A stretch of DNA of 64,000 nt, taken from Macrostomum lignano (lineage: Eukaryota). The notes under the pieces were generated by a model, which ran no database searches, had not been told where the DNA came from, and was given only the letters and a program-made list of their open reading frames with translations. The DNA lies in assembly GCA_002269645.1 (NCBI GenBank), contig NIVC01002956.1, positions 62,001 to 126,000 on the forward strand, given 5' to 3'. This document shows positions 2,540 through 58,700 of the stretch, in pieces. How positions within the stretch are numbered: the first letter of the stretch is position 1; each line of letters begins with the position of its first letter. A program made the position numbers and the translations under genes.

Positions 2540-5268
2540 TATTCTTATTTTTTCTTAGAATTTTTTCTTGTAATGCTCACACCCATTCCCGCCGGGAAAA
2601 GTTTCTAAAGTACCACAGAGTTTCTACATAGACTTCACTTATACTTATTGACTGCCTGCGCGTAGAGTTTGCACAGAGATTTTCTGTTTCAAGCAAATAT
2701 ACATACATAGATTCAGACGCCAGTTTCGACTCTGATACTTCGTCGAGTCAGTATTCCACCGCTGATGAAACTTTCGAATGGTCTGAGGACGATGAGATGG
2801 ACATCGCTGAGAACAACGAGCAAGCCGGTGGGTGGCACATGGTTCAACCGAATGAGGACAACAGGCCATCAGCCCTACCCGATTTTCTCGGAACACCTGG
2901 CATCCGACCAGACTGGCAGCCTCCACCAACTGCTGATGGAAACGAAATGCTTTCCTAAAGCTTTTTTTTCAGACCAGTTGTTCGAAGACCTCAGCAATTG
3001 GACTAATGCTAAGGCTTGGAGAATTTTCAAGAAGCCGAAACAGAGGCTGCACTGCCGAAGCAAGTGTTGAAATGGCGGGACTCAACGACGGATGAAGTTC
3101 GTTAGTTGGAATCGTGCTTTTGATGGGTGTCGACAAGAAGCCGGAAATCGCCAACTACTGGTCAACCGATCCAGCGTTTCATTGCTCCCTTCTGGCCAAG
3201 CCATTCTCGCTCTCAAGAGACCGCTTCAAGCAGCTGCTGTCCTGCCTGCGTTTTTACAACTGCGCTGAGGCTTTAGGAGATGGCCCTCTGGCAAAGATGG
3301 AGCCCTTTCTGCACAGCGTAAAGCATCTGTGCAGCAACAATTACATGCCACGGCAGTGACTGTCGGTTGATGAGACACTCGTTTTGTACAAGGGCAGAGT
3401 TGCTTTTAAACAGTACATTCCAACAAAGAAAAGTAAATACGGAATTAAAATGTATTGTATCTGTGAGAGTGAGAGTGCGTACTTATGGAACTTCGTCGTC
3501 CACACATTCCCTGAGGTCAATAATCAGTTCGGTGAAGGCCTCGGGTGTCAGGACTTGACGATGAGTGAGAAGGTTGTTGCAGAACTGTGCCGCAGTTTGC
3601 TTAATCTTGGACACCACGTCTTGACCGACAGTTGGTTTAAGTCTCAGCGGCTGGCTACTTGGCTGTTGCAGCATGATACGCTGCTAACCGGAACAGTACG
3701 GAAAAACCGCGGTATCCCAGCTGAACTGCAAGCTGCCAACCTACATCCGAGTTCATCTGCATTCGCTCGCTCAGGGAACCTACTGGCTTGCAAATTTGTC
3801 GACAGGAAGCAGAGCGGCATAAAAACTGTGTATCTGCTAGATACAGCAGGAAAAGCTTATTGCATCCAGGTCCATCGTACCCGTCGTGGAGGTGCCGTGC
3901 AGGTGGTGCCGAAGCCTGTAAGTGTGTTAGCATACTGTGCCAGCATGGGTGGTGTTGACCATCTGGACGCTTCAATGCACCCTTACCTAGCCAATCGTAA
4001 GAGCATGCGCTGGTTCCACAAGCTTGGGTTCCACCTTTTCCTGATGCTTGTGAGAAATGCCTGGGTCATCTTCAAGCAATCGGGCGGCACAAAGACCTTC
4101 TTGCAGTTTATAAGGCTCGCAGTCAAATATCTGTTGGAGGACACTGGTGTTGCCAGGCGACGCGGTCGAATGCCAGATGGAGCAGCTGCCGGTGCTGTAG
4201 CAATGGAGCTGCTGCTCATTCTCCAAGCAAAGCTCCCAGACACAGGGACCAGGCTCGGCCACGCAAACGATGCCGAGTATGCTATGCGGCTGGCCAAGTG
4301 AAGAAGACAGTGTTTGTATGCGAAGCTTGCCCGGGAACGCCAGCACTCTGCCTTGGTGCTTGCTTCATGCAATTTCAAACCAATTAGGTCTGACGCCTGG
4401 CGATGTGTATTAGACAGTATAGAAAATATTGTAGTATCCACCCTTTCCGCAAATTTGCCTTTCTATTTTGACTTCATTTTGAATTGGTGCCACCACAGCC
4501 CCTGGTTACAGATAGTCCAGAAATTGTCCTGGTTACAGAAACTACTAATATGAGACGTAGGAATCAGAAAACAGTAGAAGAGGGTAGGGTCATGAGCACA
4601 GGGGTAGAGGTGAGGGAATTACAATAGGAAGGGGCGGATTCGCACAGTGATAACCGCAGGCGCAGAGACGGGGGAGGCAGGGGGTGTTAGAGATGGCGAG
4701 GATTCGCAATCAATCCAGGGACCCGGTCTCTCAGCTCCTAGACCTCAGTCCTAGCACCAAGGCCCCTTGAAATAAAATAATATATTTGTTGCATTATCGT
4801 GGATAGAAATTACATTATTCCGTATTAATTTGGAGTTATAATAAATTTAGATGCTTGTTGTTTTGTATTACCTGTTTCTTTCCAGTTTTCTAAAAGTTTT
4901 CTAAAATCAACTCTACAGAAAATGACGTGACAGCGTGACAATTGTGACAGCTTCCCTCCATTTTTGACCACTCCAGTTAAAAAAATGACCCCACTTCACT
5001 ATGTTCTAATATAATTTAAGTCGTTAACTTTTAAACAAAGAAAAATATATGAGTAATTGAAATTACTTTGTTTTGTTACAGTCTATCTTTTCTAAGTGCG
5101 TTTTCACTATCTTATTGGCCACTACTTGACCCGATTTCGGGCCACATCAGTCCAGAACGGGTGTGCTAATTTTGCTGGTTTTTTGGCCATAGATATAAAA
5201 AAATTCCCCGTTGGCTTTGGGTGTTGAGCCATGACCCGAATTTGGGCCATCCGTCAGCTCATGGTTAA
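2540..5268 (+). mobile_element. piggyBac-family DNA transposon, defective; right end ...TGG|TTAA at 5264-5268, left TIR not found
   Basis: Contains the transposase remnant; subterminal palindromic repeats gacccgatttcggg (~5129) and gacccgaatttggg (~5233); TTAA at 5265-5268. The left boundary is approximate. Confidence 0.65.
2710..4387 (+). pseudogene. piggyBac transposase pseudogene (stops and frameshifts)
   Basis: SRDRFKQLL, SVDETLVLYKG, KYGIK, TDSWF, GTVRKNR, MGGVDHLD; the C-terminal Cys-rich domain RCRVC...VCEAC...LCLGACF is in another frame, ending at TAG 4385-4387; in-frame TGA at 3357-3359. Confidence 0.92.
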
Positions 5269-5311: not shown

Positions 5312-5365
5312 TTATACATTAATATACAATGTATTAATGTATAAATAATGTATTAATATACATTA
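5312..5365. repeat. AT-rich palindromes: perfect 13-bp arms with 7-nt spacer, followed by an 8-bp-arm palindrome
   Basis: ttatacattaata-tacaatg-tattaatgtataa (5312-5344); taatgtat-taat-atacatta (5346-5365). Confidence 0.85.
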
Positions 5366-5493: not shown

Positions 5494-7945
5494 ATGTTCG
5501 ACGACGACGACGACGAGATAATGTTAAGTGTGGAAGAGCAGCTCGAGCTCGAAGAACAAGTTGCTGCTGAAGAGCGGCAGGCGGAGCAACTGCAGATGGA
5601 AGCTGCCGCTGCTGTTGCTACTTGTCATGAGGAGGAGTTGGAAGCTGCCGCTGCTGTTGCTACTTGTCATGAGAAGGAGTTGGAAACTGCCGCTGCTGTT
5701 ACTACTTTTCATGAGGAGCAGCAACCCAGTCGCCGGCGGATGCTATTAGAAGATGTCAGCACGCCGCAGACGAGCAGCGCAACGCCCTCTCGGCGCATCA
5801 TAGCCAATGAGACGCCGGAACCAAGCCAGCAGCGCGGCTTGCTTAACAAGCTGCCGCGATTAATTGTCTACAGCAGCGGTAGCGACGACGAACAGCAGCA
5901 GCATCCTGCTGACCACGTCGCCGGCTGCGGCGACCAGCCGCCGACTCTGCAGTTTATTCCGAAGGCGTCGCCCTCATTCCATACTACTGACTCTGCTGCC
6001 GCTGCTGCTCAAGCGTCACCGAAGCCGCACCTTCTACGGCAGCCTAGGATCGGCCCGTGCGGCATCGGCGCGCCCTGGCGCTTCACCACTCGCCCTGCTG
6101 CTCCTACTGCTGCCTTCCGATTCATGACGCCGACAGCCTCACCGAGACCTCGGTCGAGCCGCCCGCCGACGACGTTCTACCCGAGAGGTAGGTTACGTGC
6201 ATTTCGCGCTCACACTTTTGCTCATGCTACATTCTCTCATATTACAGTAGTATCATTTTCACATTGTTGTTTCCCGACGACACAGGAGCCACCGCCGCAG
6301 CCGTACCGCAGTCGAGTGCTACGCAGCGCGAGCGGGCTTTGGCCTCTGGCTACGAGCTGGCGGCCAGGGAGATGGAGGCGACAGCTAAATATAACCTCGC
6401 AGAGACGACCTGCCCGGCCGGCGAGATCCCACTGTTCCACGAAGAGGGGGAGGAACGGCAGCAGCAGCCGGCTAGCACCTCGCCGAAGGGAACGAGCTCG
6501 CGCCTTCTGGCATCGTCCGTGTCGCTGCATCCCAGCGACACCATACCAAACGACATAATGTTTTCGGCTAATGCGAGCCGGCGTTCGCATCGTGCAATGT
6601 CGGTGATTCAGCTGTACTACGTCAAGAACGCGCCCCAGATGAAGCTGATGATCAACGGCACCTGGAGCGGCGACTTCGCGACACAGTTTGCCATAGGTGA
6701 GTGAGTGAGTGTTTGCGTCGTTTCACAAGTGTCTGAAAAACTCATAACAATTATCTTCTACGTAGAACATGCGATTTTAAGAAACTCTTTAACCCATCCC
6801 CCAACGCCACCACAACAAACAACAACTACTACTACTGTATGTAATAAGGCCTGGCAGATAACGAATTTATGCTGACTCCCGCGCACATGACTGACGCGTA
6901 CGCCCCGACTCCATCTTGCCCTGTGGACAAGACACGATCGCTGTTGATATTTTTGCGATCCAATGCCATGCACAATTCCTTCTTCGCGTCTGGCTCCAGC
7001 CTGCACACCTTTGCGGTGCAGGGATGGACATGCGCCGAGATCAGGAGCGTGCGCTCAGCAGCTGCCGAAATATGACGGGTGACCATGCACGACCCCACAG
7101 CCGCCATCACCGAAATCGACGACGCTTGTCTGTCCCGCGTTGTCCAACTGTACAGATGGGCTATGTCATATCCGCTGGGGAGTATGGCACCGCGACCAGA
7201 CGACCCCCATCTCGTCTGCGGTAATCCACTGCTTTTGAAGCAGACCATGGATTACTTTACAACGGTGCAACAGATGCGCAGAATTCGTGCCGAAGAGCAC
7301 GGCGTGTCACTGCTCCCCAGCACCATTGTCTGGCCGAGTATGTGCGGGGCATGTCACCCTCTGCCTGTACAATGCATGCAGGTGCCTCCACGCGGCGACA
7401 CAGCCGCTTCAAATACGGATCAGCCGGGGTGCAGCAATGTGGCAACACACCGCATCGCGCTAGGTGGAAGCTGCGCGATTCAGCAGGCAATCTGCACAGC
7501 GATGCGGCAGACTGTAGTTGTGCCCTCAATCCTGTACCTATGGGGTGCCAGTGGAGTGGGCAAATCAGCAATGGTGGGCCTGCATTTTGGTCGTGAGACC
7601 GTATTCACTCCGAACCTTGACGAGGGTTTTGCCTTCGACGGTCTGCGCCTGGGCATTCATAGGTGTCTGTTCTTTGATGAGCTAAGCGTCTCGCAGGCCT
7701 CCTCGCAGCAGCTGCTTCTGCTGCTCAATCGCGATAAATTTACCATCAACGCCAAGCACAAGGCCCTCATTCTGACTGAATGGAGCGGCCCGGTGATGCT
7801 CGCTGGCCATGTCCCTCCCGCCGATCTGCCCATAGACTTTGTCAGGCGGGTCAACTCCGGCGGCCAGTGTATTCACGTGAAGCACGACATATTCCGGTGC
7901 ACCGGCTGCCAGCTGCAGGATGATGCTCGCGCAGAGTCTGATTAG
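5494..7945 (+). pseudogene. Three-exon gene encoding an acidic N-terminus plus a CRESS-virus Rep-like SF3 helicase; one in-frame TGA (7073-7075). Exons 5494-6187, 6286-6696, 6849-7945
   Basis: Walker A LYLWGASGVGKS, AFDG, Walker B CLFFDE, B' LLLLLNRDKFTINAKHK, motif-C-like WSGPVMLAGHVPP, Arg finger FVRRV; two phase-1 GT-AG introns (gtaggt at 6188, gtgagt at 6697) join three ORFs in frame. Confidence 0.75.
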
Positions 7946-8346
7946 AGCTTGATTAGCTGGATTGATGAACAACGGGGCAGATAAACGATGACGCACTGCT
8001 TTCCCTGCCCTTAAATATTCCCAAATCCCGATTCCCCTCCTAGCAATCAAGCCGGCCTTATATGCATTAGTAGTGGATTTTGTTGTTGTTGCTAGGCTGC
8101 TCACATAGTGCAGGATGCGCCGTAGAACGCAGGTAAACACAAAGCTAGGTAATATTACTCGTGCGTCAGCAACGCAACAAAGTTCACATTTGGCCGTTCA
8201 AGTTCCAACAATTTCGTGTTACAGCTATTATACGAGCCACTGCAGGGACAGTAAAAATTCAACTATTCTGCAGCTTTATGTGCACCTTTTGCTGCTTTAG
8301 CAGGCGCGAGCATTAGAGCCTTAACGCTACTGTAACTAAGGATAAA

Positions 8347-8445
8347 GTGCCAGACAAAACATCGGAAAAGTGCTACATTCATTTTCATACATTTCCGTAA
8401 GGCGTGTTGGCACAGTAGCACTATCGCGAAATTGTGCTTAGCAAC
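8347..8445. repeat. Inverted pair of the shared ~30-bp motif downstream of the Rep-like gene
   Basis: gtgccagacaaaacatcggaaaagtgctac (8347-8376) and gtagcactatcgcgaaattgtgcttagcaac (8415-8445); each about 23/30 identical to copies at 19990 and 19851. Confidence 0.75.
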
Positions 8446-9040: not shown

Positions 9041-9226
9041 ACTGCAGTTCATTCTTAAAGAGGTCCAGCATTTCTGTACCCCGCCCGCTGCAAGCAACCA
9101 ACAACTCGTATAATCCACATAATTTCTGCGGCTTTAGCAGGCGCGAACATTAGAGCCTTTGACTTAACTTAACTTAACTTTAACTTAAGGATAAAGTGCC
9201 ACATTCATATCCATACATTTCCGCAA

Positions 9227-9273
9227 ATGTTCAGCTTTCTGCGCCTCCTCTTTGGCGACGACGCCGCAGCTGA

Positions 9274-9317
<44 letters not shown>

Positions 9318-12300
9318 CGAAGATAAGCTGGGCGATGCGGGCGATCTGCTCTTCGCACGAGCGTCCTTTGCGGAAACCGGCTTGGACTTTGCTGAGAGTG
9401 CCCTTGGATTCCAGCAGGAAGTTCAGCCTTTGGTGCACCAGCCGTTCCGCGACCTTGGCAATGCAGCTGGTGAGGGCGACAGGGCGATACGAACCCGGGT
9501 CGTCAGCCGGTTTGCCGCGTTTCGGGATCGGAATGATAATCGCCCTGCGCCACTGGTGGGGGCAGTGTCCGCTGAGCCAGGCCTTGTTGATCAGGTCAAG
9601 TAGTCGCTGCTCGGTCCGTTCGGGGAGACGCTTGAGCATCTCGTTGGACACTCCGTCCGGGCCGGGGCTCTTCCTGGATTTCAGCGACCTCAGGGCCTGC
9701 TTAAGTTCCACGGCGGAGAAGGCGCCACAGATCTGTTGTTTGTGGTCGGGCTCGCAGCAGCGCGCTTTGATGGCGGCATAGGCGCATCTGTTGACCCCGC
9801 GGTCCGACCTCCTGCGCTCCACGCGAGACACGTCCGCGTACAGGGTGCAGAAGGCATCCGCTTTCTCCTTGTCCGTGACCGCAGTCCTCTGCCGGCGGTA
9901 TCTGGTCTCATCGGCCGGGATGGCAAGGGCCGCGTTGGGGGGAGGCGGCGGGGGTTCGCCCCTCATCGCCCGGGCCAGACCGAAAAGGTCGCTGTTGACG
10001 GACAACTCCGCGACTCGTTCGTCCCAGAAGCGGAGCTTCTCGGCCTTGATCGGGCTGGAAGAGACTCCCGCGCTTAGAGCGATCCTCTGTTTACTCGACT
10101 TCAGCAGAGCCTACGACAAGGTGTGGCGGAAGTCTCTGATCTGCAAGCTCGAGAAGCTGGGAGTCCCCGCCTGCGTCCTGCGCTGGATCAACAGCTTTCT
10201 CAGCGACAGGAGAGCGCGCGTCCGATTCGGCAATAGCCTCAGCAGAGAGCGCATCTTCCGGGAAGGCCTGCCCCAAGGCTCGGTGATCGCCCCTCTGCTT
10301 TGGCTGGTCTACGTCAACGACCTGCCAACTGCCATCGCGGAAGCATCGCCGGAAGCCGAGATCAGTCTGTATGCCGACGACTCGGCCATCCTGGCGCGCC
10401 ATACGGACCTCGAAAGCTGCGGGCACATCGTGCAACCGGCTCTGGACTCCGTGGCCCGCTGGTGCGACCAGAACAAGGTCGTGCTCAGCACCGGGAAGTG
10501 CAGTTACAGCACTTTCACGCTGAGCCCCAACGAGAACCGCGGCAAGACCAGAGTCGAACTCAACATCGGCGGCAGCGAGCTTCGTTTCGAGCCCAACCCG
10601 GTCTTCCTCGGCGTCAAATTCGACGACCACCTCGGGTTCGCGGAGCACGCCAATGATACCCGCCGCCGCATGGCTGCCAGAAGACGCCCACTGCAGGCCA
10701 TCGCACACCGGCAAACGGGTGCGACGCAGAGCATCCTCCGCACCGTTTACGTTGCCACTATCCGAGCTGTGGCGGACTACGGCAGCGGCGTATGGCTCGC
10801 GGGAGCGGCACCGAGCACCAGGCTCCTAGTCGAGCGCCAGCAGAACGCATGCGCGCGCCTGATTACTGGCTGCATATCCACGGCCCGCACTGAAAATCTC
10901 CTTAGCATCGCCGAGCTGCCGCCCCTCAGCCACGTGGCCATCGAACGCGCGTGCACGCTGAGGGAGCGGATGGCTCGCCTCCCGGACGGATCGCCATCGC
11001 AGAGCATCGCGACAGCGGTCAACACCCCGCGCCTCAAAAATCGCGCCTTCGAAGCCGCCAACCGGCCGAACCAGGCCGAGGGGGTCAATCAGCGCCTCCC
11101 GGACAGGGACCTTGACGTCCGACGTCGCTTCCGCGGCTGCTGGAGGCGCGCGGCGCGGGAGCTAGAATGTTGCGAGGTACTGGACAGGACGCCCCGGGCC
11201 CACCGACCCCTTGGCCCCCCACCGTGGGAAGTGGCCGAGGCCGGCCGCGTCCAGTTCGATGTCTCGCTCAGCAAGGTTATCAGCCGCGACATGCCGGCGG
11301 CCATGAAAGCCAACATAGCCAGGCAAATCGTCGGCCCACTGGAGACCTCCGGACACGTCATCTGGACGGACGGATCCGCGGCTGGCGGTTTCACGAACGG
11401 AGGCGGTGCGGCGATCGCCCAGTGGCTTCCGGACAACGACGCCCGCCTCGTCGCGGCTGGCGCGCTCTGCAGCAGCTTTACCACAGAACTCTGCGCCATC
11501 AGGGAGGCCTTAGACATCGCCTACCACCCGGCGCCGCCCACGGGCGCTATAACTATCGCCACGGACAGCCTCAGCGCCATCCAGGCGCTCAGCGCCGGAC
11601 CCCTGTGCCAGCAAAACTCAGTTGCCGCGGACTGCTGGAGTAAACTCCTCAACCTGATCGCCATGGACCGCCCTGTTCACTTCGCTTGGGTGCCATCCCA
11701 CTGCGGGGTCGCCGGCAACGAGGCGGCCGACCGCGCCGCCGCCAACGCGGCCGGGCTCGACCAACAGGCGGTGCCGATCGAGCTTGACGCGGCAAGGGCA
11801 GCCGCTCGTCGCTCTCGCAGAAAGCTGGACGCCAGAATCCTGCCGCCGAGACTGCAGCCGCCGACGAGCCTCCCTAGACGTCTCCAGGTCCTGGTCAACC
11901 AGCTCCGGTCCGGCGCCAGCACCATCAACTTTAGCACCAGACACCGCCTGGGCTTGGAACAGTCCCCCGCCTGCCCCGATTGCGGCGCGGAGGACTCGGC
12001 TGAACATCTGCTCCTCCACTGCCCCCGCGGTGACCACTTCCGGAGAAGAAGCGGCCTGGCCCCGAGCGACCTGATGGGGTCCCCGGAGGCCATCGTCAGA
12101 CTATTACGCAGCATGGGGCGGCTCCCCTCGGGGTCCACGCCCCCCTCCAGATCGGCCTAGCCGGAACGGAGGCGCCCCGAAGAAGAAGAAGAAGAAGAAG
12201 AAGAAGCAGCAGCATCCACCAGCGAGCACGAGTCTGAAGCAGCTGCTCCACCAATCGCCGCCGCCGCTGAACAGGTATATTCGGCTAGTTTCTGTTGGCC

Positions 12301-14311: not shown

Positions 14312-15282
14312 ATGGAATCCGCCGCCGCCGCAGCCAAAGCAACACCAGCGTCTGCCGACCCGCCGCCAAACGAGGCGTCCGCCATCTCCGCCGCCACTGG
14401 CATCGACGCTGCCACCGCTGCTGCCGAAAAGAAGAAACGCGGCTCCCTGTCCGCGCCATTCAGACCCGATTCGCCAGCCGTGCTGCAGCTAAGAGTGCTG
14501 AGATCGCTATACTACGACCCTTCGACAGGTGTTCACGATCAAAACATCGACGGCTTTGAGGAGAAGTGGAAAGCAATCGCCGACCTGGTACTATCAAGCT
14601 TTGAGAAGATGGCGAAAGTACCATATTCGGCCTCCACAGCCGTGGACGGTGAAAATTACGACTGCAGCGATGACCAAGATGCCGCAGCGACTCTTCCGCC
14701 GCCGCCGCCGCCGCCGCCGCCGCAGCCAATAGCTGAGGCTTCTGCATGCTCGGAGTCGCCGACTACTCAGCCGCAGCCTCCAAGAGACTTTCTATTCTGT
14801 CTGGCTGACCCAAATGCCGCCGCAGACGCTCTACGCCAGACTAGTAGCAGCATCGGCACGGTCGCTGATTAAATGTATGCGCTTTATTATTCTCTACATC
14901 GAAGACGATCCCGGGCATCGCCTGCTGGTTATTCGGCGTCTTCGCCTACCAGCCGATATCGCCGACAATCTGGAGGAGCGCTGTTTGCTATTTAAAAAGC
15001 GCCTGCGAGTGCTCCGGATGCAACACGACTTTTATCGTAAGCTTGACGCCCCTGAACACCACGCGAAAAAGCAGAAAAAGCTGCTGACCAGCGAAGAATG
15101 GCGCCTCGTGCTTGCCGACTACAGCAAGCTCGTAGAGCAATTCGGTTACGGCGGTAGCAGTTCTCGTGCTCGACTACTGGGGAGCGCCGCAGACCAAGTC
15201 GTTAGGGCTGCTGCAGACGAAATTGGCGATGCCGCCGCCGCCGCCGCCGCCGCCGCAGCCGACGATGACGCAAATGCTTCAG

Positions 15283-15316
<34 letters not shown>

Positions 15317-18300
15317 TAGCGGTAACACCAGCGCAGACGACGGCGAGGACACCGACGACGATGCTTTGTCCGCGTCGCAGCAGTCGATGATCCAGCTGCG
15401 CAATAGATTTGCTCTCCACGCCACTGTGCATCATCCGATACCAACACTAGAGGAGAGGAGCTTCTGGCCCTCATCTCTAACACAAACCTCATGCTCTGCA
15501 ACCGCGGCAGCACTCCTACCTTTAATAATGGCAGATGGACCGAGGTCCTCGACGCCACACTCGTTACCCCAAGACTCTTTGACAGAGTTGAGGAGTGGAG
15601 AGTCTGGTCTGAGGAGCCCTCCCTGTCTGACCACTGCTTTATCGCCTTTAACATCGCGGATACTAAAACCCAGTCTCCGATCACTTGGAGACGCAATATC
15701 CGCAACACTGATTGGGCGGCCTACAAGGCTGCCCTTGATCTGCACCTGCAGGAACTCACGGACTTACGTCCGATTGAGACCTGCGAGGATGTGGATCATA
15801 TGGCTGAGACGCTGACAGGTTGCATTATTGCAGCCTACGAAGCGGCTTGTCCTGCTCGCGCCTACAAAGGCAAGACCTCGGCGCCGTGGTGGAACCCGGA
15901 CCTGGGGAAACTCAGGCGGAAGGCCAAAAGCCTTCATCGCCGTGTCATGAAGACCGGAAACCCGGAGGACATGGAGCTTTTCCGGCAAGCCTCCCGCAAT
16001 TTCAAATCTGAAGTGCGCAAGGCCAAGGAATGTAAGTGGCGCCAATTCTGCAATGAATTGGATCAAGACAGACCTACTTCTAGGCTTGTCAAGGCCCTTA
16101 CAATGGACAAAATGTCCAAATTAGCCATGATAAAAAAGATGATGGCTCTCTTACTAAAGACCCTGAAGAAGTGCTTCAGCATATGCTTAGCACATTCTTC
16201 CCGAGGGTACCTACTGCTAGACCGGAGTCCAACCATTCGATGGATGGAGCCACCCTAGCGGCGGGCATTGTCACTGAAGACCTAATCGCTCGTGCGGTCA
16301 GAACCTTCAAACCCTTCAAATCTCCTGGACCTGATGGTATCTACCCTGTTCTCCTTCGTGAAGCAGCCAAGATACCCTCGTTCCTGAGACTCACCCGCAA
16401 TCTTATGCGGGCCTCTATCCAGCTGGGATACGTTCCCAAATGCTGGACTGAAGCTCGGGTAGTCTTTATTCCCAAACCTGGGAAGGGTGACTACCAAAGC
16501 GTCAAGGCCTTCCGGCCTATTAGCTTAACGTCAGCAATGCTTAAGCTCACTGAGAGGCTTATTCTCTGGCGGCTGCTCTCCTGCGAGCTGACAGCGATGC
16601 CCCTCAGCAATAATCAGCACGCCTTCCGTACCGGGAGGTCGACTGACAGCGCCCTGCATGCGATTGTCGAGAAGATTGAACGGGCGGTACTGGGTGACGG
16701 TTACGCCCTGGCTCTCTTTCTTGACATTGTTGGCGCCTTCGACAACGTTATCTTTGAAGCGTTTCAGAGGCCCTTCAAAATCGCAAAGCTCATGCTACCC
16801 TCATACGGTGGATCATGTACATGATCTCCAACCGTACGGTCACTGCCCAACTTCTTGGGCAAACTGCCTCCACAGAGTCTGTAAGGGTGGACCCCAAGGC
16901 GGAGTCCTCACCCCGACGCTCTGGAACCTGGTCATGGACGCTCTTCTGAGTGACTCCCGACCCGACCCCGTCTTCAAAGTCGGGTATGCTGATGACGTCA
17001 CGGCCATTGTGGCAGGACCGTCTCCCAGCACGCTCAGGGATCTGATGCAGAGCTTTATCCGCAAAGCAGAATCCTGGGCCAATGACAATGGTCTGGAACT
17101 CTCTGAGCCCAAAACCGTTGCCATTATGTTTACCAGCAGACTACGCTGGAACATACGTCCTCTGCAGCTCTACGGCAGAGATATTGCCTTCGCGCACCAG
17201 ACCAGATGTCTCGGGGTCACACTTGACCACCGGCTCAACTGGTCCTACCACGTGAAAGCAAAAGCCAAGCGTGCCTCAGCCATCCTGGCCCAGCTCCGAC
17301 GAGCACTTGGCACTTCTTGGGGTCTATCCCCAAAGCGGCTTTGGTGGATCTATACTTCCGTAGTTAGACCTGCCATTACGTACGCCTCGGTTGTCTGGGT
17401 TAGCGCTACCCAGGTCAAAAGCCATGCAGACCTGCTCAACACGATCCAAGGCAGAGCGTGTAGGCTCATCTGCAACGCCACCAGGTCCACGCCCTTTGCT
17501 GGCATGGGGGCCTTCCTTAATCTACCGCCTCTTGACCTCTTCGTCAGGGGTGAGGCGGCTAGAACGACGCGGCGTCTAATTGATGCCGGCGTCAAATTCA
17601 TTTACATGAGAGCACCTGCTAAGCGGAACCTTGTCCCGCATAGCGACCTGAGCCTCAACTTTCTCAACGAGTGTCAGGCCAATCGCGTCTTCACCGATCG
17701 CATTGCCTCAACGCTCAACCTGAGACAGCGCTACTCCGTAGCTATCGACTCGCGCGATAACATCAATGACCAATGGAACCTTGGTGAGCTTCATTGTTAC
17801 ACCGACGGTTCTAAGCAGTCAGCCAACACCGGCTTTGGTGTTGGAATCTTTCTGAACGGGAAGGTCATCGCTACCCACGCTCAATACACTGGGGTCAACT
17901 CCAGTGATTTTCAAAATGAAGTTCTGGCCATCAGCTCCTGCACTGCAGAGCTTCTCGCCACTGGCGTTACTGGTAAGAACATCATTTTCCATTCGGACAG
18001 CCAAGCCGCCTTGCACGCCATCAGTGGCTGCAGTACCAACTCTGCAACAGTCCTCGACTGTATCAAACTCCTCAACGTGTTGGGTTCCACCAACAAAATT
18101 ACCCTTAAGTGGGTTCCGGGGCATGTGGGGATCCGAGGAAATGAGTTGGCTGACACCCTTGCAAAAGTTGGTGCCTCCGGCTCCTCTCTCGGTCCCGAAC
18201 CCCTTGTCCCGATTCCTGGCTGTGTCATCGACTCGCGCATCAAAGCGTGGATCAGGACCCAGCACCGCTCGACTTGGGCGAACTGCACTACCTGCAGGCA

Positions 18301-19535
18301 ATCCAGAGGCGCTGTCCCTCAGCCCTCTCACCAGCTCCGGAAGCTCCTCTTGCGCCTCTCGCGCAGAGACATCCGGGCTGCCACCATGAACCTCTCTGGT
18401 CACGGCTGCTTCTCCAGGCACCAGCACCTGCAGGGCAACGCCACCAACGCCACCTGTAGTTTCTGCAACTCAGGTGACGAAACCGCTGAGCATTTCGTCA
18501 GCATCTGTCCCGCCTTCACGCGGGCCAGACTCACTTACCTCGGGCCACACACATCTATTACTGAAGCGTGCAAACCCGAAAACTTTAATCAGCTCATGCG
18601 CTACCTTCGGGCCACCCGCAGGGCTGAACTCTCCTTTCCAGAGAGCACTATAGCTGCTGGCGACACTGGGGGACCTCCCTGGGCGGCGCCAACCCTCCGT
18701 CCATAGCGACGCGTCGGCTGTTCAGGGACTAGCGGAATGGGCGCCCGCGCCTTCCCGCTGTGTCCCCTCCGGGACAGCCCTGCAGCTGCAGCGTCCTCTG
18801 CCTGCCGACGTCCTTTGTTAACCTGCTGCTCAAGTGGCGACACAGCGCGGGCTTCGGCGCCAGCCCAGATGGCGGCGACGTTTTTGTGTTTTGCACACGA
18901 AACGGAACCAAAATGTCGTTCCGTTGCAGTGTTGGGTCGCCACGGCGTCGGTCCAAACGTGTTCCGCAGCTCAACACAGGACGTTGTCATGTCCAACAAC
19001 CCGGACCTAATAAATTAGATGGCGTCACTGTATGAGACATCGCCGGCAATGATCATGCGGCACTACGCGTCGAACGCTCTGTTGGCATCTCGCTCCGACA
19101 TGCAAGCCGTCGTCCAGGGTATGATTGAGCAGCGGGCCTCAACATCGGTAGCATCGCTGCGGCGCCAGCGGCTGTGGACGAGGCGCCGCCGAATGCTGCT
19201 GAACCTTGGCAGCAGCAAAGCCGGGAAAGACGGCAGCGAAAAATAGCGCCGGCAGTGGTGGCGACGGCGGCGCTTACAGCCCATCGCAGCCGATTACGTC
19301 AACAGAGCGACAGCTCCAGGAGGCCACTAAACGAAAGGCGCTAGTGATGCCGCCGCAACTCACATCTAAACGGAAAGCTGCGGCCAACGCGACGTGCACC
19401 TTGATGCGACTGGACGACAACGACTATGATGACGCGGCGGAGAGCAGCATGGCGGCTACTGCAGCGACGTCTGACGTCAGAGTCAGATGCAGCGGCCGTA
19501 AGAGAGTTAAATTGTGCACGCCAGCTTCTGTTTGA
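14312..19535 (+). pseudogene. Tyrosine recombinase-like gene (YR copy 2) with N-terminal region, split by a LINE, frameshifted
   Basis: QLRNRFALHATVHHPI | LINE | CSVLCLPTSFVNLLLKWR...VFVFCTRNGTKMS; GPNVFRSSTQDVVMSNNPDL*MASLYETSPAMIMRHY; C-terminal PQLTSKRKAA...KLCTPASV aligns with copy 1; frameshifts near 14870 and 18920, TAG at 19016-19018. Confidence 0.8.
15441..18786 (+). mobile_element. Non-LTR retrotransposon (APE-RT-RNaseH-CCHC, LOA/I-group-like), 5'-truncated inside the endonuclease, two frameshifts; 3' boundary uncertain
   Basis: NTRGEELL..NRGSTPTF..LSDH; KSPGPDG, FRPISLTS, QHAFRTGRST, LDIVGAFD, PQGGVLTPTLW, YADD, YTDGSK, SDSQAAL, KWVPGHVGIRGNELAD, CSFCNSGDETAEHFVSIC. Confidence 0.92.
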
Positions 19536-41657: not shown

Positions 41658-44600
41658 TCAAGGCAGATTATCGAAGCTGATCAAGTCCGCGGCTGCCGGG
41701 CTCTGCAGAGCCCCCTCCTTGTCAGCTTGATCCGTCTTAGCGTCCACCGGAATATACCAGGCTTCAACTGGCAGGTCGCTGCCCACATTCTCGTCCAGCT
41801 CGGACAGGCTGTTTCGCCGTGGCCGGTTGCTGTCCAAACTGTCCGGGAAATCGTCATCAAAGCAGCAGATGCTGACGGACCGCCTCAGGTGTGGCTGCAG
41901 CAGCGGACGGGCCGACGGATCGGCCGGGACGGATGGGGACGGCAGGAGGCTGTCGGCTTCGGTGGCAGCGGCAGCGCTGGCAGCGGGTTGGCAGCCGGAG
42001 AGCCACCAGCGCCATTCCAGGTAGCGCCAGGCGCGCGTTCGAGATAAGCGAGTCTGCGATTCAGCAAGAGGGGTGGCTGACTGTCTGCGTCTCACTCCAC
42101 TCACCCATCTATCTATCAGGATCTCACTCCACTCTCTCAACCATTTATCAGGATCTCACTTCACTCTCTCAACCATTTATCAGGATCTCACTTCACTCTC
42201 TCAACCATTTATCAGGATCTCACTTCACTCTCTCATCCATCTATCAGGATCTCACTCCACTCACCCATCTATCTATCAGGATCTCACTCCACTCTCTCAA
42301 CCATTTATCAGGATCTCACTTCACTCTCTCAACCATTTATCAGGATCTCACTCCACTCTCTCAACCATTTATCAGGATCTCACTCCACTCACCCATCTAT
42401 CTATCAGGATCTCACTCCACTCTCCCATCTATCTATCAGGATCTCACTCCACTCTCTCATCTATCTATCAGGATCTCACTCCACTCACCCATCTATCTAT
42501 CAGGATCTCACTCCACTCACCCATCTATCTATCAGGATCTCACTCCACTCTCTCAACCATTTATCAAGATCTCACTTCACTCTCTCATCCATCTATCAGG
42601 ATCTCACTCCACTCTCTCAACCATTTATCAGGATCTCACTCCACTCTCTCAACCATTTATCAGGATCTCACTCCACTCACCCATCTATCTATCAGGATCT
42701 CACTCCACTCTCTCAACCATTTATCAAGATCTCACTTCACTCTCTCATCCATTTATCAGGATCTCACTCCACTCTCTCAACCATTTATCAGGATCTCACT
42801 CCACTCTCTCAACCATCTATCAGGATCTCACTCCACTCTCTCAACCATTTATCAAGATCTCACTTCACTCTCTCATCCATCTATCAGGATCTCACTCCAC
42901 TCTCTCAACCATCTATCAAGATCTCACTCCACTCTCTCAACCATTTATCAGGATCTCACTCCACTCTCTCAACCATTTATCAGGATCTCACTCCACTCTC
43001 TCAACCATTTATCAGGATCTCACTCCACTCTCTCAACCATTTATCAGGATCTCACTCCACTCTCTCAACCATTTATCAGGATCTCACTCCACTCTCTCAT
43101 CCATTTATCAGGATCTCACTCCACTCTCTCAACCATTTATCAGGATCTCACTCCACTCTCTCAACCATTTATCAGGATCTCATTCCACTCTCTCAACCAT
43201 TTATCAGGATCTCACTCCACTCTCTCATCTATCTATCAGGATCTCACTCCACTCTCTCAACCATTTATCAAGATCTCACTTCACTCTCTCAACCATTTAT
43301 CAGGATCTCATTCCACTCTCTCATCCATCTATCAGGATCTCATTCCACTCTCTCAACCATTTATCAGGATCTCACTCCACTCTCTCATCCATCTATCAAG
43401 ATCTCGCTCCACTCTCTCATCCATCTATCAAGATCTCACTCCACTCTCTCAACCATTTATCAGGATCTCACTCCACTCTCTCAACCATTTATCAGGATCT
43501 CACTCCACTCTCTCAACCATTTATCAGGATCTCACTCCACTCTCTCAACCATTTATCAGGATCTCACTCCACTCTCTCAACCATCTATCAGGATCTCACT
43601 CCACTCTCTCAACCATTTATCAGGATCTCACTCCACTCTCTCAACCATTTATCAGGATCTCACTCCACTCTCTCAACCATTTATCAGGATCTCACTCCAC
43701 TCTCTCAACCATTTATCAGGATCTCACTCCACTCTCTCAACCATTTATCAGGATCTCACTCCACTCTCTCAACCATTTATCAGGATCTCACTCCACTCTC
43801 TCAACCATCTATCAGGATCTCACTCCACTCTCTCAACCATTTATCAGGATCTCACTCCACTCTCTCAACCATTTATCAGGATCTCACTCCACTCTCTCAA
43901 CCATTTATCAAGATCTCACTTCACTCTCTCAACCATTTATCAAGATCTCACTCCACTCTCTCATCCATCTATCAGGATCTCATTCCACTCTCTCAACCAT
44001 TTATCAGGATCTCACTCCACTCTCTCAACCATTTATCAGGATCTCACTCCACTCTCTCATCCATCTATCAGGATCTCATTCCACTCTCTCAACCATTTAT
44101 CAGGATCTCACTCCACTCTCTCATCCATCTATCAGGATCTCATTCCACTCTCTCAACCATTTATCAGGATCTCACTCCACTCTCTCATCCATCTATCAGG
44201 ATCTCATTCCACTCTCTCAACCATTTATCAGGATCTCACTCCACTCTCTCATCCATCTATCAGGATCTCACTCCACTCTCTCAACCATCTATCAGGATCT
44301 CACTCCACTCTCTCAACCATTTATCAGGATCTCACTCCACTCTCTCAACCATCTATCAGGATCTCACTCCACTCTCTCAACCATTTATCAGGATCTCACT
44401 CCACTCTCTCATCCATCTATCAGGATCTCATTCCACTCTCTCAACCATCTATCAGGATCTCACTCCACTCTCTCAACCATTTATCAGGATCTCACTCCAC
44501 TCTCTCAACCATTTATCAGGATCTCACTCCACTCTCTCAACCATTTATCAGGATCTCACTCCACTCTCTCAACCATCTATCAGGATCTCACTCCACTCTC

Positions 44601-47600
44601 TCAACCATTTATCAGGATCTCACTCCACTCTCTCAACCATTTATCAGGATCTCACTCCACTCTCTCATCCATCTATCAGGATCTCACTCCACTCTCTCAA
44701 CCATCTATCAGGATCTCACTCCACTCTCTCAACCATTTATCAGGATCTCACTCCACTCTCTCAACCATCTATCAGGATCTCACTCCACTCTTTCAACCAT
44801 TTATCAGGATCTCACTCCACTCTCTCATCCATCTATCAGGATCTCATTCCACTCTCTCAACCATCTATCAGGATCTCACTCCACTCTCTCAACCATTTAT
44901 CAGGATCTCACTCCACTCTCTCAACCATCTATCAGGATCTCACTCCACTCTCTCAACCATTTATCAGGATCTCACTCCACTCTCTCAACCATTTATCAGG
45001 ATCTCACTCCACTCTCTCATCCATCTATCAAGATCTCGCTCCACTCTCTCATCCATCTATCAGGATCTCACTCCACTCTCTCAACCATTTATCAGGATCT
45101 CACTCCACTCTCTCAACCATTTATCAGGATCTCACTCCACTCTCTCAACCATTTATCAGGATCTCACTCCACTCTCTCAACCATTTATCAGGATCTCACT
45201 CCACTCTCTCAACCATTTATCAGGATCTCACTCCACTCTCTCAACCATTTATCAGGATCTCACTCCACTCTCTCAACCATCTATCAGGATCTCACTCCAC
45301 TCTCTCAACCATTTATCAGGATCTCACTCCACTCTCTCAACCATTTATCAGGATCTCACTCCACTCTCTCATCCATCTATCAAGATCTCGCTCCACTCTC
45401 TCATCCATCTATCAGGATCTCACTCCACTCTCTCAACCATTTATCAGGATCTCACTCCACTCTCTCAACCATTTATCAGGATCTCACTCCACTCTCTCAA
45501 CCATTTATCAGGATCTCACTCCACTCTCTCAACCATTTATCAGGATCTCACTCCACTCTCTCAACCATTTATCAAGATCTCACTTCACTCTCTCATCCAT
45601 CTATCAGGATCTCACTCCACTCTCCCATCTATCTATCAGGATCTCGCTCCACTCTCTCAACCATTTATCAAGATCTCACTTCACTCTCTCATCCATCTAT
45701 CAGGATCTCACTCCACTCTCCCATCTATCTATCAGGATCTCGCTCCACTCTCTCAACCATTTATCAGGATCTCACTTCACTCTCTCATCCATCTATCAGG
45801 ATCTCACTCCACTCACCCATCTATCTATCAGGATCTCACTCCACTCACCCATCTATCTATCAGGATCTCACTCCACTCTCTCAACCATTTATCAGGATCT
45901 CACTCCACTCTCTCAACCATTTATCAAGATCTCACTTCACTCTCTCATCCATCTATCAGGATCTCACTCCACTCTCCCATCTATCTATCAGGATCTCGCT
46001 CCACTCTCTCAACCATTTATCAAGATCTCACTTCACTCTCTCATCCATCTATCAGGATCTCACTCCACTCTCCCATCTATCTATCAGGATCTCGCTCCAC
46101 TCTCTCAACCATTTATCAAGATCTCACTTCACTCTCTCATCCATCTATCAGGATCTCACTCCACTCTCCCATCTATCTATCAGGATCTCGCTCCACTCTC
46201 TCAACCATTTATCAAGATTTCACTTCACTCTCTCATCCATCTATCAGGATCTCACTCCACTCTCTCATCTATCCATCAGGATCTCGCTCCACTCTCTCAA
46301 CCATTTATCAAGATCTCACTTCACTCTCTCATCCATCTATCAGGATCTCACTCCACTCTCCCATCTATCTATCAGGATCTCGCTCCACTCTCTCAACCAT
46401 TTATCAAGATCTCACTTCACTCTCTCATCCATCTATCAGGATCTCACTCCACTCTCCCATCTATCTATCAGGATCTCGCTCCACTCTCTCAACCATTTAT
46501 CAAGATCTCACTTCACTCTCTCATCCATCTATCAGGATCTCACTCCACTCTCCCATCTATCTATCAGGATCTCGCTCCACTCTCTCAACCATTTATCAAG
46601 ATCTCACTTCACTCTCTCATCCATCTATCAGGATCTCACTCCACTCTCTCAACCATTTATCAGGATCTCACTCCACTCTCTCAACCATTTATCAGGATCT
46701 CACTCCACTCTCTCAACCATTTATCAGGATCTCACTCCACTCTCTCAACCATTTATCAGGATCTCACTTCACTCTCTCAACCATTTATCAGGATCTCACT
46801 TCACTCTCTCATCCATCTATCAGGATCTCACTCCACTCTCCCATCTATCTATCAGGATCTCACTCCACTCTCTCAACCATTTATCAGGATCTCACTTCAC
46901 TCTCTCATCCATCTATCAGGATCTCACTCCACTCTCCCATCTATCTATCAGGATCTCACTCCACTCTCTCAACCATTTATCAGGATCTCACTTCACTCTC
47001 TCATCCATCTATCAGGATCTCACTCCACTCTCTCAACCATTTATCAGGATCTCACTTCACTCTCTCATCTATCTATCAGGATCTCACTCCACTCTCTCAT
47101 CTATCCATCAGGATCTCTCTCCACTCTCTGATCGATAAAACTTAGAAAACTCGGGAAATACTTGGATGAATCTAATTATACCGATTTACATAACTCTCTT
47201 CTTTTCTAGCGGAAAGATCTTACCCGAACCAAGCTGAAAGCTGATACCCTTTCTGGGAAACAAAGCAGCATTCGCACCGCAGCAAACAAAATTTAAATTA
47301 TTCAATGCAGCGGTTTCTAACAAAGATACATGTAGTAACCATTTGTACTAGACGCAGTATCCTAATCTCGAAACTAGGAAGCTTACCTTGTCAGCCAAGG
47401 CGGACGCGTCCGAGCCCAGACAGGTGAGTAGCGAGCCGTCAGTCACCTGAGTTTAGGAATAAGCAAAGGTGTAGCTTGCATTATTTTGTCAAAAATCTGC
47501 GACTTTAGACAGTGGCGATAAACTAAAGGATTGGAGGAGGGACTTTGTAGCACCAACTGAAGGATTGAGGGAGGGGCATTGTGGCGCCAACTGAAGGATT

Positions 47601-55736: not shown

Positions 55737-58700
55737 ATGTCGCTGCCGTCCATGTCTGAGCGGCCTGAGGCGCCTCCTTCACCGCGCACAGCTCCGCCGC
55801 GTCTGTCAATGCTGGCCTGCTTTCTAATTGGCAGCTTCGCCCTGGGCTCCTGGATCGACATCAATGGCGTGTTCAACCAGCTGCCGCTGATGGTGAAGAG
55901 CCTGCCGGAGGGCTGGTCGCTGCCGTCCTACCTGGCCGTGATTGTGCAGCTGGGCAACATCGGCCCGGCCGCCTTCCTGTTGGCCAGTCGGCTTAGCCGC
56001 GGCAAATTCACTGACCGAGCAGGCGTGTTCGTCATCAATGCGACTGGCGCCGTGGCTTTGCTTGTGCTCGCCTTCGTCTGGCCAATCACCATCGACGGTC
56101 GCAGCCTTCCACTCATGCTGGTAGTGCTGACCCTGTCCCTGGTAGACTGCTCCTCCTCTGTTGTCTATCTCAGCTACATGTCCGCCTATCCCACCGCGTA
56201 TTTGAGCGCCCTGTACGTTGGCGAAGGAGTTGGCGGACTGATCCCAGGGCTGCTGGCATTGATACAGGTGAGTCCATTGACTGGGTCTTGCCGTGATGGT
56301 CTGAGTGAGAGCGGAGAGGCAGATTCAAGAACTGGGGAGAGCGGAGAGGCAGATTCAAGAACTGGGGAGAGCGGAGAGGCAGATTCAAGAACTGGGGAGA
56401 GTGGAGAGGCAGATTAAGGGATTGGGGAAAGCGGAGAGGCAGATTCAAGCACTGGGGAGAGAGCGGAGAGGCAGATTCAAGCGCTGAGGGAGAGCGGAGA
56501 GGCAGATTCAAGCGCTGAGGCAGAGCGGAGAGGCAGATTCAAGCGCTGAGGCAGAGCGGAGAGGCAGATTCAAGCGCTGAGGCAGAGCGGAGAGGCAGAT
56601 TCAAGCGCTGAGGCAGAGCGGAGAGGCAGATTCAAGCGCTGAGGCAGAGCGGAGAGGCAGATTTAAGCGCTGAGGGAGAGCAGAGAGGCAGATTCAAGCA
56701 CTGGGAGAGAGCGGAGAGGCAGATTCAAGCGCTGAGGGAGAGCGGAGAGGCAGATTCAAGCGCTGAGGCAGAGCAGAGAGGCAGATTCAAGCGCTGAGGG
56801 AGAGCGGAGAGACAGATTCAAGCGCTGAGGCAGAGCGGAGAGGCAGATTCAAGCGCTGAGGCAGAGCAGAGAGGCAGATTCAAGCGCTGAGGGAGAGCGG
56901 AGAGACAGATTCAAGCGCTGAGGCAGAGCGGAGAGGCAGATTCAAGCGCTGAGGGAGAGCGGAGAGGCAGATTCAAGCGCTGAGGCAGAGCGGAGAGGCA
57001 GATTCAAGCGCTGAGGGAGAGCAGAGAGGCAGATTCAAGCACTGGGAGAGAACGGAGAGGCAGATTCAAGCACTGGGAGAGAGCGGAGAGGCAGATTCAA
57101 GCACTGGGAGAGAGCGGAGAGGCAGATTCAAGCACTGAGGGAGAGCGGAGAGGCAGATTCAAGCACTGGGAGAGAGCGGAGAGGCAGATTCAGGTCTATC
57201 AAGTTTGCTAACAGGGAATTTGCTAGCCGAAGCTTGCTAGTAGCTGTCAGTGGCAGTACGAGCTATATATTTATACTCGGACGAATCAAAGCGGCTGACT
57301 CACTTGTCGATATGAAAACAAACAGCAAATAAGAGAACAATGCAGCAAATTCGGCTAGCAGATTTCCTGCTAGCAGATTTCGGCAGGCAAATTTCTCGCT
57401 AACAAACTTCGGCTAGCAAATCTCATACTCCCTGCAGATTCAAGTGCGTCAGTATGAGCCTCATAAGTTTATGTATCCAAAAAAGCATTCCACGTGAAGT
57501 ATTTGGTGTGCTTGATGCTAAGAAAAATTACTGTATTATAATGCTTCGCACTTCGCAGCTTATAGAAAGCGGACTGCAGGTCAATCGGCACTGCTATTAT
57601 GCAGCACTCAGCGGTTAAAGATAAGAATCGCTACAGTCTGGCCTTGCTGTACAATGAAAAGTCATATGGTCATTGTATTTAGTCAAGCTTTTTCTTGTAG
57701 GCCATAAATATGTTGGCGAAAGTGCGCAGTTCAACGGCTAAGAACCAAGGCCCCATCGGCATAAGCCATGGCGCACAGGTGCGGCAGCGTATAAGTGCCG
57801 CCTTATCGTTATCGAACAGTAATTACTACAAAAAATTTCAACACAATGAACACACGAAATTGCAATTATATTTTCGATGAAAGCAGAAACTGAGGGTGGA
57901 CACCTTCGCTCGCTTTTTGGTTGGTGGGTCTACTTAACCAAATCAACTCCTTCTCACACTGCTCAATATTGCTACTTATAGTAGGCTACTTTGCACTCTA
58001 CTTCTCATCCTACCTACTCTTATACCTAGGTTTCTAATTCTATGCATGTCGGTGCTTAAAAGATAAGCTTGTCTTAAGCTTGAGTCTCAAGCTTGTCTTA
58101 AGCTTGTATTGCTCAGGAAACTTTTCTGCCGATATGTATCGTTTTTTGATACTTGCAAAAACAGTTTTTTGATACTTGCATATTAAAAAGGCCTTTACAA
58201 AGTTACCATAAATAGCCCAGAACCGACTGGGTGATAAACTGCTTCAATGTTGAAGCATTAGAACGCCGATATTTTCTTAGAAAGCCGACCTATTTATCAT
58301 TCCCAGGGATCTGGCGGCGCCCCAGAGTGCATCAACGGCACGCATCCGGAGTACGCGCCGCCCCGCTACTCTGTGGGCGCATTCTACGGCCTGCTGTGCG
58401 GCATGCTCTGCTACAGCCTGCTGGCCTTCTGGCTGCTCACCGCCTGGCCGTTTAAGCTGGCTAATAGGCCGCCATTGAAGACTGAGCAGCAGCTGGCCGC
58501 CTCCGCAGCCCAGGTGGGTGGCTTATCTCAGGTTTAATCGGCGTTTAGACAATGAAAAGTAGGAGGATGAGAAACTACTGAGGAGAACTTTATAATATCA
58601 GAAACATTTTCCCGAGCTTTATCCGGGTACATCACGAACCGAAGTAATTTCCGGTTGAGCTACCGGATGTAGTTGACCCTGCGGTAATTTGACTCCAAGA

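Follow-up and report, generated by a model that had tools for sequence, protein, structure and literature searches.

A chromosomal gene putatively of Rep origin, from an uncatalogued lineage of single-stranded DNA viruses, with altered sensor 1 and no detectable nicking motifs

The closest described counterparts of the gene considered here are the replication initiators (Reps) of the Cressdnaviricota, for which structures have been solved from porcine circovirus 2 (PCV2; 8xms) and vientovirus (9pqj and 9pqq). Rep-like insertions in chromosomes are a known phenomenon: they have been described across eukaryotes, some of them are conserved and expressed, and co-option has been suggested, in a study that mentions neither introns nor flatworms (Liu et al., 2011; PMC3198968). 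Splicing of Rep is also known, since free replicons of the circular Rep-encoding single-stranded DNA (CRESS) type can carry Rep introns of ~100-200 nt (PMC4611678). Here we describe a gene at positions 5494-7945 of a 64,000-nt stretch of contig NIVC01002956.1 (positions 62,001 to 126,000; hereafter the window). We consider it likely that this is a chromosomal gene derived from the Rep of an uncatalogued CRESS-like single-stranded DNA (ssDNA) virus lineage, and that it belongs to a small subfamily long resident in eukaryotic genomes.

The gene resembles the Cressdnaviricota Reps, the nearest of which are encoded on contigs L002, L004 and L007, in the order and spacing of the superfamily 3 (SF3) helicase motifs, in the Arg finger and in a linker that reads YRWA..DDPFVV in the Reps and RWAMSYP..DDPHLV in the window; an acidic N-terminal motif is possibly common to both. 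It differs from them in lacking detectable HUH nuclease motifs, in having a His for the sensor-1 Asn and FFDE for the Rep LFEEF, in an extra His/Cys motif, an extension of ~360 codons and introns, and in being chromosomal without a capsid gene. Like the elements of Liu et al. (2011), it would be a Rep homologue of viral origin that has become fixed in a chromosome of its host, but here an exon junction is shared with a Macrostomum lignano locus, the nuclease residues are systematically lost and subfamily-specific additions are present. The adeno-associated virus (AAV) isoforms Rep40 and Rep52 (1s9h, 9rm5), which are among the best profile and fold matches, likewise combine an SF3 ATPase with oligomerisation-type helices in the absence of a working nuclease; however, they are made by the virus alongside full-length Rep, keep the Asn of motif C and are 9-12% identical to the window model. 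The spliced Reps of PMC4611678 also have a short GT-AG intron in the Rep coding sequence, but those replicons are episomal, whereas the window introns are chromosomal and vary by host locus, and the closest virus-type Reps are unspliced.

The homology of the gene is clearest in its SF3 part, where the frame is open throughout, downstream of a single in-frame stop. Every search and model was based on the sequence pieces as they are, or on their relatives. A phmmer/HMMER search of 1.84 billion protein representatives returned 15 relatives, with a best E of 4e-24 for an M. lignano protein and E values of 2e-5 to 1e-3 for HUH-bearing Reps of 370-440 aa. The terminal open stretch was aligned by hhalign with four full-length HUH+SF3 Reps from Walker A to motif C (98.7% probability, E 1.5e-16), and the family profile matches Rep, Rep40/68 and NS1 among PDB sequences. 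An AlphaFold2 (AF2) model of the same stretch, built on the 15-sequence alignment, has a mean predicted local distance difference test (pLDDT) score of 77.9, rising to ~90 in the ATPase core. Its best Foldseek matches in the PDB are all SF3 helicases, namely bovine papillomavirus (BPV) E1, AAV2 Rep40, parvovirus B19 (B19V) NS1, the PCV2 Rep ATPase and vientovirus Rep; the top ones (E1, Rep40, NS1 and PCV2 Rep ATPase) have E values of 8e-7 to 5e-5, and the PCV2 Rep ATPase superimposes with a template modelling (TM) score of 0.64 and a root-mean-square deviation of 3.0 Å. In the viral structure library BFVD the best matches are mostly Cressdnaviricota Reps, with parvovirus NS1 in addition.

Single-sequence searches of the window pieces were far less telling. 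Pfam yielded weak, generic P-loop matches only (AAA_16, E 0.014; AFG1, E 0.043), with none for Viral_Rep, Gemini_AL1 or RNA_helicase from any piece even at E up to 10, and PHROGs, PDB-sequence and word-indexed protein searches returned nothing informative; a word-indexed homologue search with the subfamily profile found P0004 only. An earlier interpretation of the locus, made from the letters and their open reading frames (ORFs) and here called the sequence-only reading, had nonetheless assigned the C-terminal part to SF3 ATPases related to ssDNA-virus Reps, and the phmmer, hhalign, PDB-profile and fold matches agree with it; the Pfam search for Rep families that accompanied it as a suggested check drew a blank. 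The Walker A, Walker B, B', Asn-lacking motif C and Arg finger that it had named were all located column by column in the alignment, in which the G, K and E columns of Walker A/B are nearly invariant among the relatives. The sensor-1 Asn of motif C, by which SF3 helicases are recognised, is absent from the window.

Upstream of the ATPase core lies a Rep-type linker, which a relatives-only subfamily profile matches at E 1.8e-8 among 1,692 six-frame pieces, or at E 0.0012 when Reps are included in the profile. The helices modelled by AF2 in this region have pLDDT values of 83-92.

The 15 relatives fall into two groups, virus-type Reps (group B) and the subfamily of the window gene itself (group A). 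In group B, four proteins of 370-440 aa (P0010, P0011, P0012 and P0015) are complete Rep-like sequences, and P0009 is a 157-aa helicase-only fragment of a virus-type Rep. The full-length members carry HUH motifs (FFITV, HLHAYLKF and KYITKED) followed by an SF3 helicase with GPSNVGKS, LFEEF, a conserved Lys, VSN and NRL. A gemini- or genomovirus-like character of the helicase, as proposed in the sequence-only reading, has only indirect support, through these relatives: P0015 reaches the Gemini_AL1 cutoff exactly (24.0 bits), and a joint profile of the full-length Reps matches the Rep catalytic domain 1l2m (E 0.0018) as well as AAV Rep40/68. It finds no footing in the window itself, from which no Pfam Rep match was obtained.

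The genes of three group B Reps were located on Logan contigs (L002, L004 and L007, 2.3-2.9 kb long, from SRR14381426, SRR13494277 and ERR8081447). In these, an unspliced Rep gene precedes an overlapping ORF2 and then ORF3, with no change of strand. The N-terminus of ORF2 is rich in Arg and Lys in L004 and L002, and neither ORF2 nor ORF3 has a Pfam match. The last ORF of L004, its ORF3, is homologous to the first ORF of L007 (E 3e-6), and the arrangement suggests that the two contigs are circularly permuted relative to each other; terminal overlap, as a sign of circularity, was not found in the Rep contigs. Scans of IMG/VR with the window ORF and the Rep alignment revealed no relatives.

Group A comprises P0001-P0008 and P0013. 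P0001 is an uncharacterised M. lignano protein, a singleton cluster, encoded on a 220-kb contig near an EME1/MUS81-type gene. All members of the subfamily keep Walker A, Walker B (FFDE), the B' Lys and the Arg finger (alignment A1). The Asn of Rep motif C is replaced by His in the window, P0001 and P0002 and by Val in the remaining members. Every complete member ends in a His/Cys motif, HD[IV]xxCxGxC, which was found in P0001, P0002, P0003, P0004 and P0013 and in the next ORF pieces of L005 and L003. The best-preserved member is L008, a JGI metagenome contig with an uninterrupted ORF of 444 aa (1531-2865) that is 52% identical to P0001 (E 6e-77), matches the window at E 2e-38 and matches the two M. 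lignano upstream ORFs at E 9e-13 and 2e-4; a separate upstream ORF (452-991) contains an acidic motif and a Thr-rich run. The linker and helicase are in separate ORFs in L006, and L003 has one frame change near its end. In the M. lignano locus L001 one frame change, or an assembly indel, lies between the upstream part and the annotated ORF. A literature search found no paper on this subfamily.

Food for thought is what became of the nuclease. The HUH region was aligned among relatives only (the L008 ORF, the M. lignano ORF, the upstream ORF of L006, P0005 and four Reps), and in every alignable subfamily member both His residues, the Tyr and the Lys opposite Rep motifs I-III are replaced. By sequence, therefore, the subfamily would be nuclease-dead. 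Motifs I-III map between the conserved junction and the linker, a stretch whose counterpart in the window is the beginning of exon 3, not exon 2. The Rep-like body starts, by collinearity, right after intron 2, so that LFHEEGE and LYYVK in exon 2, offered in the sequence-only reading as loose HUH remnants, would sit in the N-terminal extension and do not survive as candidates. Its other statement on this domain, that canonical HUH motifs are absent, stands: profiles of motifs I-III match nothing anywhere in the locus. Neither hhalign of the upstream window pieces against Reps nor two rounds of relatives-only hidden Markov models over all six-frame pieces revealed an HUH domain, and BLASTP comparisons of the upstream window pieces with P0005 and with the upstream ORFs of M. 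lignano gave no significant match. A by-eye alignment of the region ahead of the linker was statistically unsupported and is not claimed.

Ahead of the Rep-like body the gene has an acidic, low-complexity extension of ~360 codons (368 in the window, 358 in the M. lignano locus). The sequence-only reading had seen this as a Rep helicase fused to a long acidic N-terminus. The acidic N-terminus is there; its fusion to the Rep is doubtful, as a similar motif opens the M. lignano sequence (..DSDDERI..), L008 (..DSDDELL..) and two virus-type Reps, P0012 (..SDSDFEDV..) and P0015 (..SDSEDFV..). The pairwise comparison of these motifs gives an E of only 0.13, and the similarity is suggestive, not proven, of a motif common to the window, M. 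lignano, L008 and the two Reps. With such openings in virus-type proteins as well, at least the start of the extension may be ancestral.

We found that the coding frame of the gene, ~730 codons in all, contains one in-frame stop (TGA, 7073-7075) and no frameshifts by break count, in agreement with the proposal that two phase-1 GT-AG introns join three ORFs into one frame broken only at this codon. Both gaps are of phase 1, and with the two of them removed the three reading-frame pieces fall into a single frame. The mere existence of a link is little proof, considering that hundreds of stop-free GT-AG links can be enumerated (369 at junction 1 and 55 at junction 2). The proposed donors are, however, the top-scoring ones at their own junctions, with 7/9 consensus matches for intron 1 and 8/9 for intron 2. 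Both coincide with a sharp step in GC content from ~0.60 to ~0.40: the exon pieces have 0.57-0.62, intron 1 has 0.42, intron 2 has 0.39 and the flanking DNA has 0.36-0.44. Intron 2 has a weak acceptor (AAG), with an alternative in-frame acceptor (CAG) 9 nt downstream, ending at 6857.

The in-frame stop means that the sequence, taken as given, cannot yield a full-length product. The copy at 5494-7945 has thus either been recently disabled, or shows a polymorphism or assembly error, or has been reduced to a helicase-only product; of these, recent disablement is probable, and any loss of function in the window copy would be recent because only one stop is found in ~730 codons. Splicing around the stop is unlikely: among 48 frame-keeping GT-AG pairs, none has a donor scoring above 5/9. 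Recoding as selenocysteine is unsupported, with no selenocysteine insertion sequence or other Rfam family at threshold. The coordinates of the features are collected in Table 1.

Table 1. Features of the putative Rep-derived gene (window positions; a slash marks an exon-intron boundary)
Feature	Position	Strand	Description or basis
Rep-derived gene, whole	5494-7945	+	Three exons and two introns; sequence, ORF list, break count, C-terminal homology, GC content
Exon 1	5494-6187	+	694 nt; 3' end GAG/GTAGGT
Acidic N-terminal motif MFDDDDDEIML...	5494-5559	+	Comparable acidic openings in relatives
Tandem repeat in exon 1	5594-5719	+	Three in-frame copies of a 42-nt (14-codon) unit; repeat search and TRF, 93% matches
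Candidate intron 1	6188-6285	+	98 nt, phase 1, GT..AG; acceptor CAG/G, AG at 6284-6285
Exon 2	6286-6696	+	411 nt; 3' end TAG/GTGAGT
Intron 2	6697-6848	+	152 nt, phase 1, GT..AG; AG at 6847-6848 opens the third frame
Rep-type linker RWAMSYP...DDPHLV	7154-7216	+	Within an oligomerisation-domain-like helical region, ~7136-7297
SF3 (AAA+) ATPase core	7466-7924	+	hhalign, AF2, Foldseek
Walker A GASGVGKS	7544-7567	+	Alignment column check
Walker B CLFFDEL	7664-7684	+	Alignment column check
B' FTINAKHK	7739-7762	+	Conserved Lys column in both groups of relatives
Motif C-like VMLAGHVPP	7793-7819	+	His replaces the Asn of Rep VSN
Arg finger DFVRRV	7835-7852	+	Aligned with NRL of Reps and RR/QR of the subfamily
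His/Cys motif HDIFRCTGC	7883-7909	+	C-terminal in the subfamily; absent from full Reps

Part of the evidence on how long the gene may have been resident comes from a comparison of intron positions between loci. In the M. lignano locus L001, a 358-codon acidic, Q/S-rich ORF ends in ...TTC ATC G/gtgagt, and after an intron of 78 nt (7529-7606, GC 0.42) the next ORF opens with cag/GC CGT GCA AAG. In the window, the 368-codon extension ends in ...GCC ATA G/gtgagt and the frame resumes with aag/GC CTG GCA GAT. Intron 2 of the window and the L001 intron are thus identical in phase and in the Gly codon that they split (G/GC). L008 reads through this position with an unsplit GGC codon, which confirms the M. 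lignano junction and, by position, intron 2 of the window. In L005 a canonical intron lies elsewhere, within the helicase domain (CAA/gtgagt...tttcag/, 122 nt, GC 0.25). From the introns, the sequence-only reading had concluded that the gene was long resident and not a simple fresh viral fragment. The latter we also find, the gene being split by spliceosomal-type introns. Long residence, too, remains our conclusion, but by another route: given the spliced Reps of free replicons, introns alone would not prove residence, which we base instead on the junction shared with the M. lignano locus, on the lineage-specific introns elsewhere, and on saturated synonymous but constrained nonsynonymous sites.

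The last point comes from a comparison of the window, M. lignano and L008, in which the proportion of synonymous differences (pS) is saturated at 0.82, that of nonsynonymous differences (pN) is 0.35-0.48 and the window copy carries its stop; the saturation precludes a dN/dS ratio. The pattern indicates a long divergence under what appears to be protein-level constraint over most of its course. This has to be set against the possibility that the locus is a dead viral fossil, a decaying endogenous viral element that never had a host function, with leftover frames and 'introns' that are chance GT-AG pairs around AT-rich insertions. Such a fossil would have accumulated only a single break in ~730 codons while conserving all nucleotide-binding motifs across the subfamily, and its pN would lie far below a saturated pS with respect to relatives of 38-53% identity. 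The stop, the neighbourhood rich in transposable elements, the hundreds of frame-linking GT-AG pairs, the upstream pieces that lack detectable similarity and the frame changes of other members do fit a fossil. Chance GT-AG pairs, though, would hardly have the best-scoring donors at sharp GC steps, nor a phase and codon at junction 2 that are common to M. lignano and confirmed by L008, and we regard the fossil explanation as unlikely.

It could also be that the gene is a helicase gene only, consisting of the C-terminal open stretch in the manner of the 252-aa M. lignano model, with the upstream pieces unrelated to it. An ATG does follow closely after the stop, the M. lignano annotation PAA62424.1 begins within the linker, and the upstream pieces have no significant matches. 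Nonetheless, the 444-aa ORF of L008 spans from upstream of the junction through the helicase and matches both M. lignano upstream ORFs, and in the window the profile homology sets in sharply with the open stretch, from its first codon on, as expected of an interrupted frame rather than of a true start. A helicase-only gene therefore has a low probability, somewhat below that of the fossil.

A third scenario is the recent integration of a virus whose Rep was already spliced, in which case the introns would be viral and uninformative on residence. The two gaps, of 98 and 152 nt, are indeed close to the intron lengths reported for free CRESS Reps (PMC4611678). We find this scenario very unlikely, in view of the unspliced state of the closest virus-type Reps, of intron positions that vary by locus (L008 is without the shared intron and L005 has one in its helicase domain) and of the synonymous saturation between host copies. 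Moreover, all members of the subfamily lack the nuclease residues and have an altered sensor 1, and no capsid remnant was found near the locus.

The surroundings of the gene are those of animal DNA, with an exon of an SLC52 gene, transposon ORFs and a satellite. They bear on a further explanation, that what is seen here is part of a mobile element encoding Rep (a transposon or an integrated virus-like element) rather than a host gene. Fungi and lower animals are reported to contain transposable elements of gemini-like and parvo-like type (PMC3198968), and a piggyBac fragment and reverse transcriptase fragments flank the locus. Against this, no second copy of the gene was found within the 64-kb window and no terminal repeats bracket the locus. 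The M. lignano protein forms a singleton cluster, and the nicking residues are absent in the relatives and undetectable in the window, so we give this explanation marginally less credit even than a recent spliced virus. That the gene encodes a non-viral cellular P-loop ATPase merely resembling SF3 helicases, as the generic AAA_16 and AFG1 matches might hint, is most improbable given a chain of homology that leads to HUH+SF3 Reps, the conserved Rep-type linker and top fold matches that are all SF3 helicases.

Other features of the window were recorded alongside the gene. The SLC52 riboflavin-transporter exon is at 55737-56417 (+; Pfam E 2e-53), and its best database relatives are at most 49% identical. 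The piggyBac-type transposase fragment (3384-4301, +) matches Pfam DDE_Tnp_1_7 at E 4e-34 over the C-terminal part of the model only. Non-LTR (long terminal repeat) retrotransposon ORFs with RVT_1 and RNase_H are present at 9205-12160 and 14312-18706; the former element appears rearranged, its upstream piece at 9205-10005 being on the minus strand. A satellite array at 42090-47129 consists of ~157 copies of the 32-nt unit TCTCACTCCACTCTCTCAACCATTTATCAGGA (92% matches) and accounts for an extreme GC skew and two spurious ORFs of ~1,700 codons. The Rfam scan of the window gave no matches.

Closer to the gene, an antisense ORF of 152 codons (7682-8140, minus strand) overlaps its 3' end and is most likely a side effect of GC-rich coding sequence on the plus strand. 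A partly palindromic motif of 18 nt (TGACCCGAWTTBGGGCCA) occurs twice shortly before the start codon, at 5127-5144 and 5232-5249, with 0.01 expected by chance. Just upstream of the start codon there is also a hairpin at 5312-5344 (14-bp stem, 5-nt loop, z = -6.5); with its stem of A and T only and its loop of 5 nt it was rejected as a viral origin. On the 3' side, direct repeats at 8287-8351 and 9124-9200, ~840 nt apart, match over 36 nt at 92% and then over 15 nt at 100%, and are possibly the ends of an unclassified repeat.

Several observations weigh against a Rep-derived gene of long residence, in whole or in part, and are best considered together. Nothing upstream of the linker in the window significantly matches any relative or profile; that exons 1 and 2 and the beginning of exon 3 are parts of one gene is suggested by collinearity, by the length of the extension and by the shared junction. 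Intron 1 was assigned from consensus and composition, without support from other loci. In the AF2 model of the uninterrupted relative P0005, the N-terminal 107 residues have pLDDT values below 50 and the fold equivalent to the nuclease is unmodelled. Exact look-ups of the terminal ORF, with either start, found no record. Several members of the subfamily may be decaying, as the frame changes in M. lignano and L003 would suggest. Lastly, the function proposed below is one that we infer.

With these reservations, we still favour descent from a viral Rep, and a possible course of events can be outlined. The Rep of an uncatalogued ssDNA-virus lineage, with a geminivirus-like nuclease domain, would have been endogenised in a host chromosome. 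It would have retained the helical linker and an SF3 core that binds nucleotide and has an altered sensor 1, lost its detectable nicking motifs and gained the His/Cys tail and the introns. The intact protein can presumably still bind nucleotide, and it would probably form rings through the linker. It would not nick DNA and could therefore not start rolling-circle replication. The likeliest role for such a protein would be either interference with related incoming Reps or their origins, that is, a dominant-negative, virus-derived defence, which by itself we consider rather improbable as matters stand, or a host ATPase function that is not yet defined.

A bolder interpretation is that we are looking at an ancient, domesticated, nuclease-dead Rep family of flatworms and other invertebrates, maintained by selection for some benefit to the host, such as the blocking of related ssDNA viruses through mixed, inactive rings of Rep. 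Taken as one joint reading, it would include the shared intron, the His or Val at sensor 1, the His/Cys module and an acidic motif inherited from the virus; we put it forward tentatively, as possible but clearly less probable than its negation.

The novelty lies in a combination of features: an exon junction shared with the M. lignano locus L001, introns particular to single lineages, systematic loss of the nuclease residues, and additions specific to the subfamily. Few cases of Rep-like insertions kept over long periods as spliced host genes are well documented, and this subfamily offers a compact test case, in which the nicking residues are systematically lost and the nucleotide-binding residues kept, and in which a viral sister lineage is absent from IMG/VR yet present in sequencing data. 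If the family should turn out not to be expressed and conserved, the locus would still illustrate neatly a virus-derived gene that was recently disabled. If it is, the family would document how a replication initiator was turned into a non-replicative ATPase, and would point to ssDNA viruses that infect, or once infected, flatworm-like hosts.

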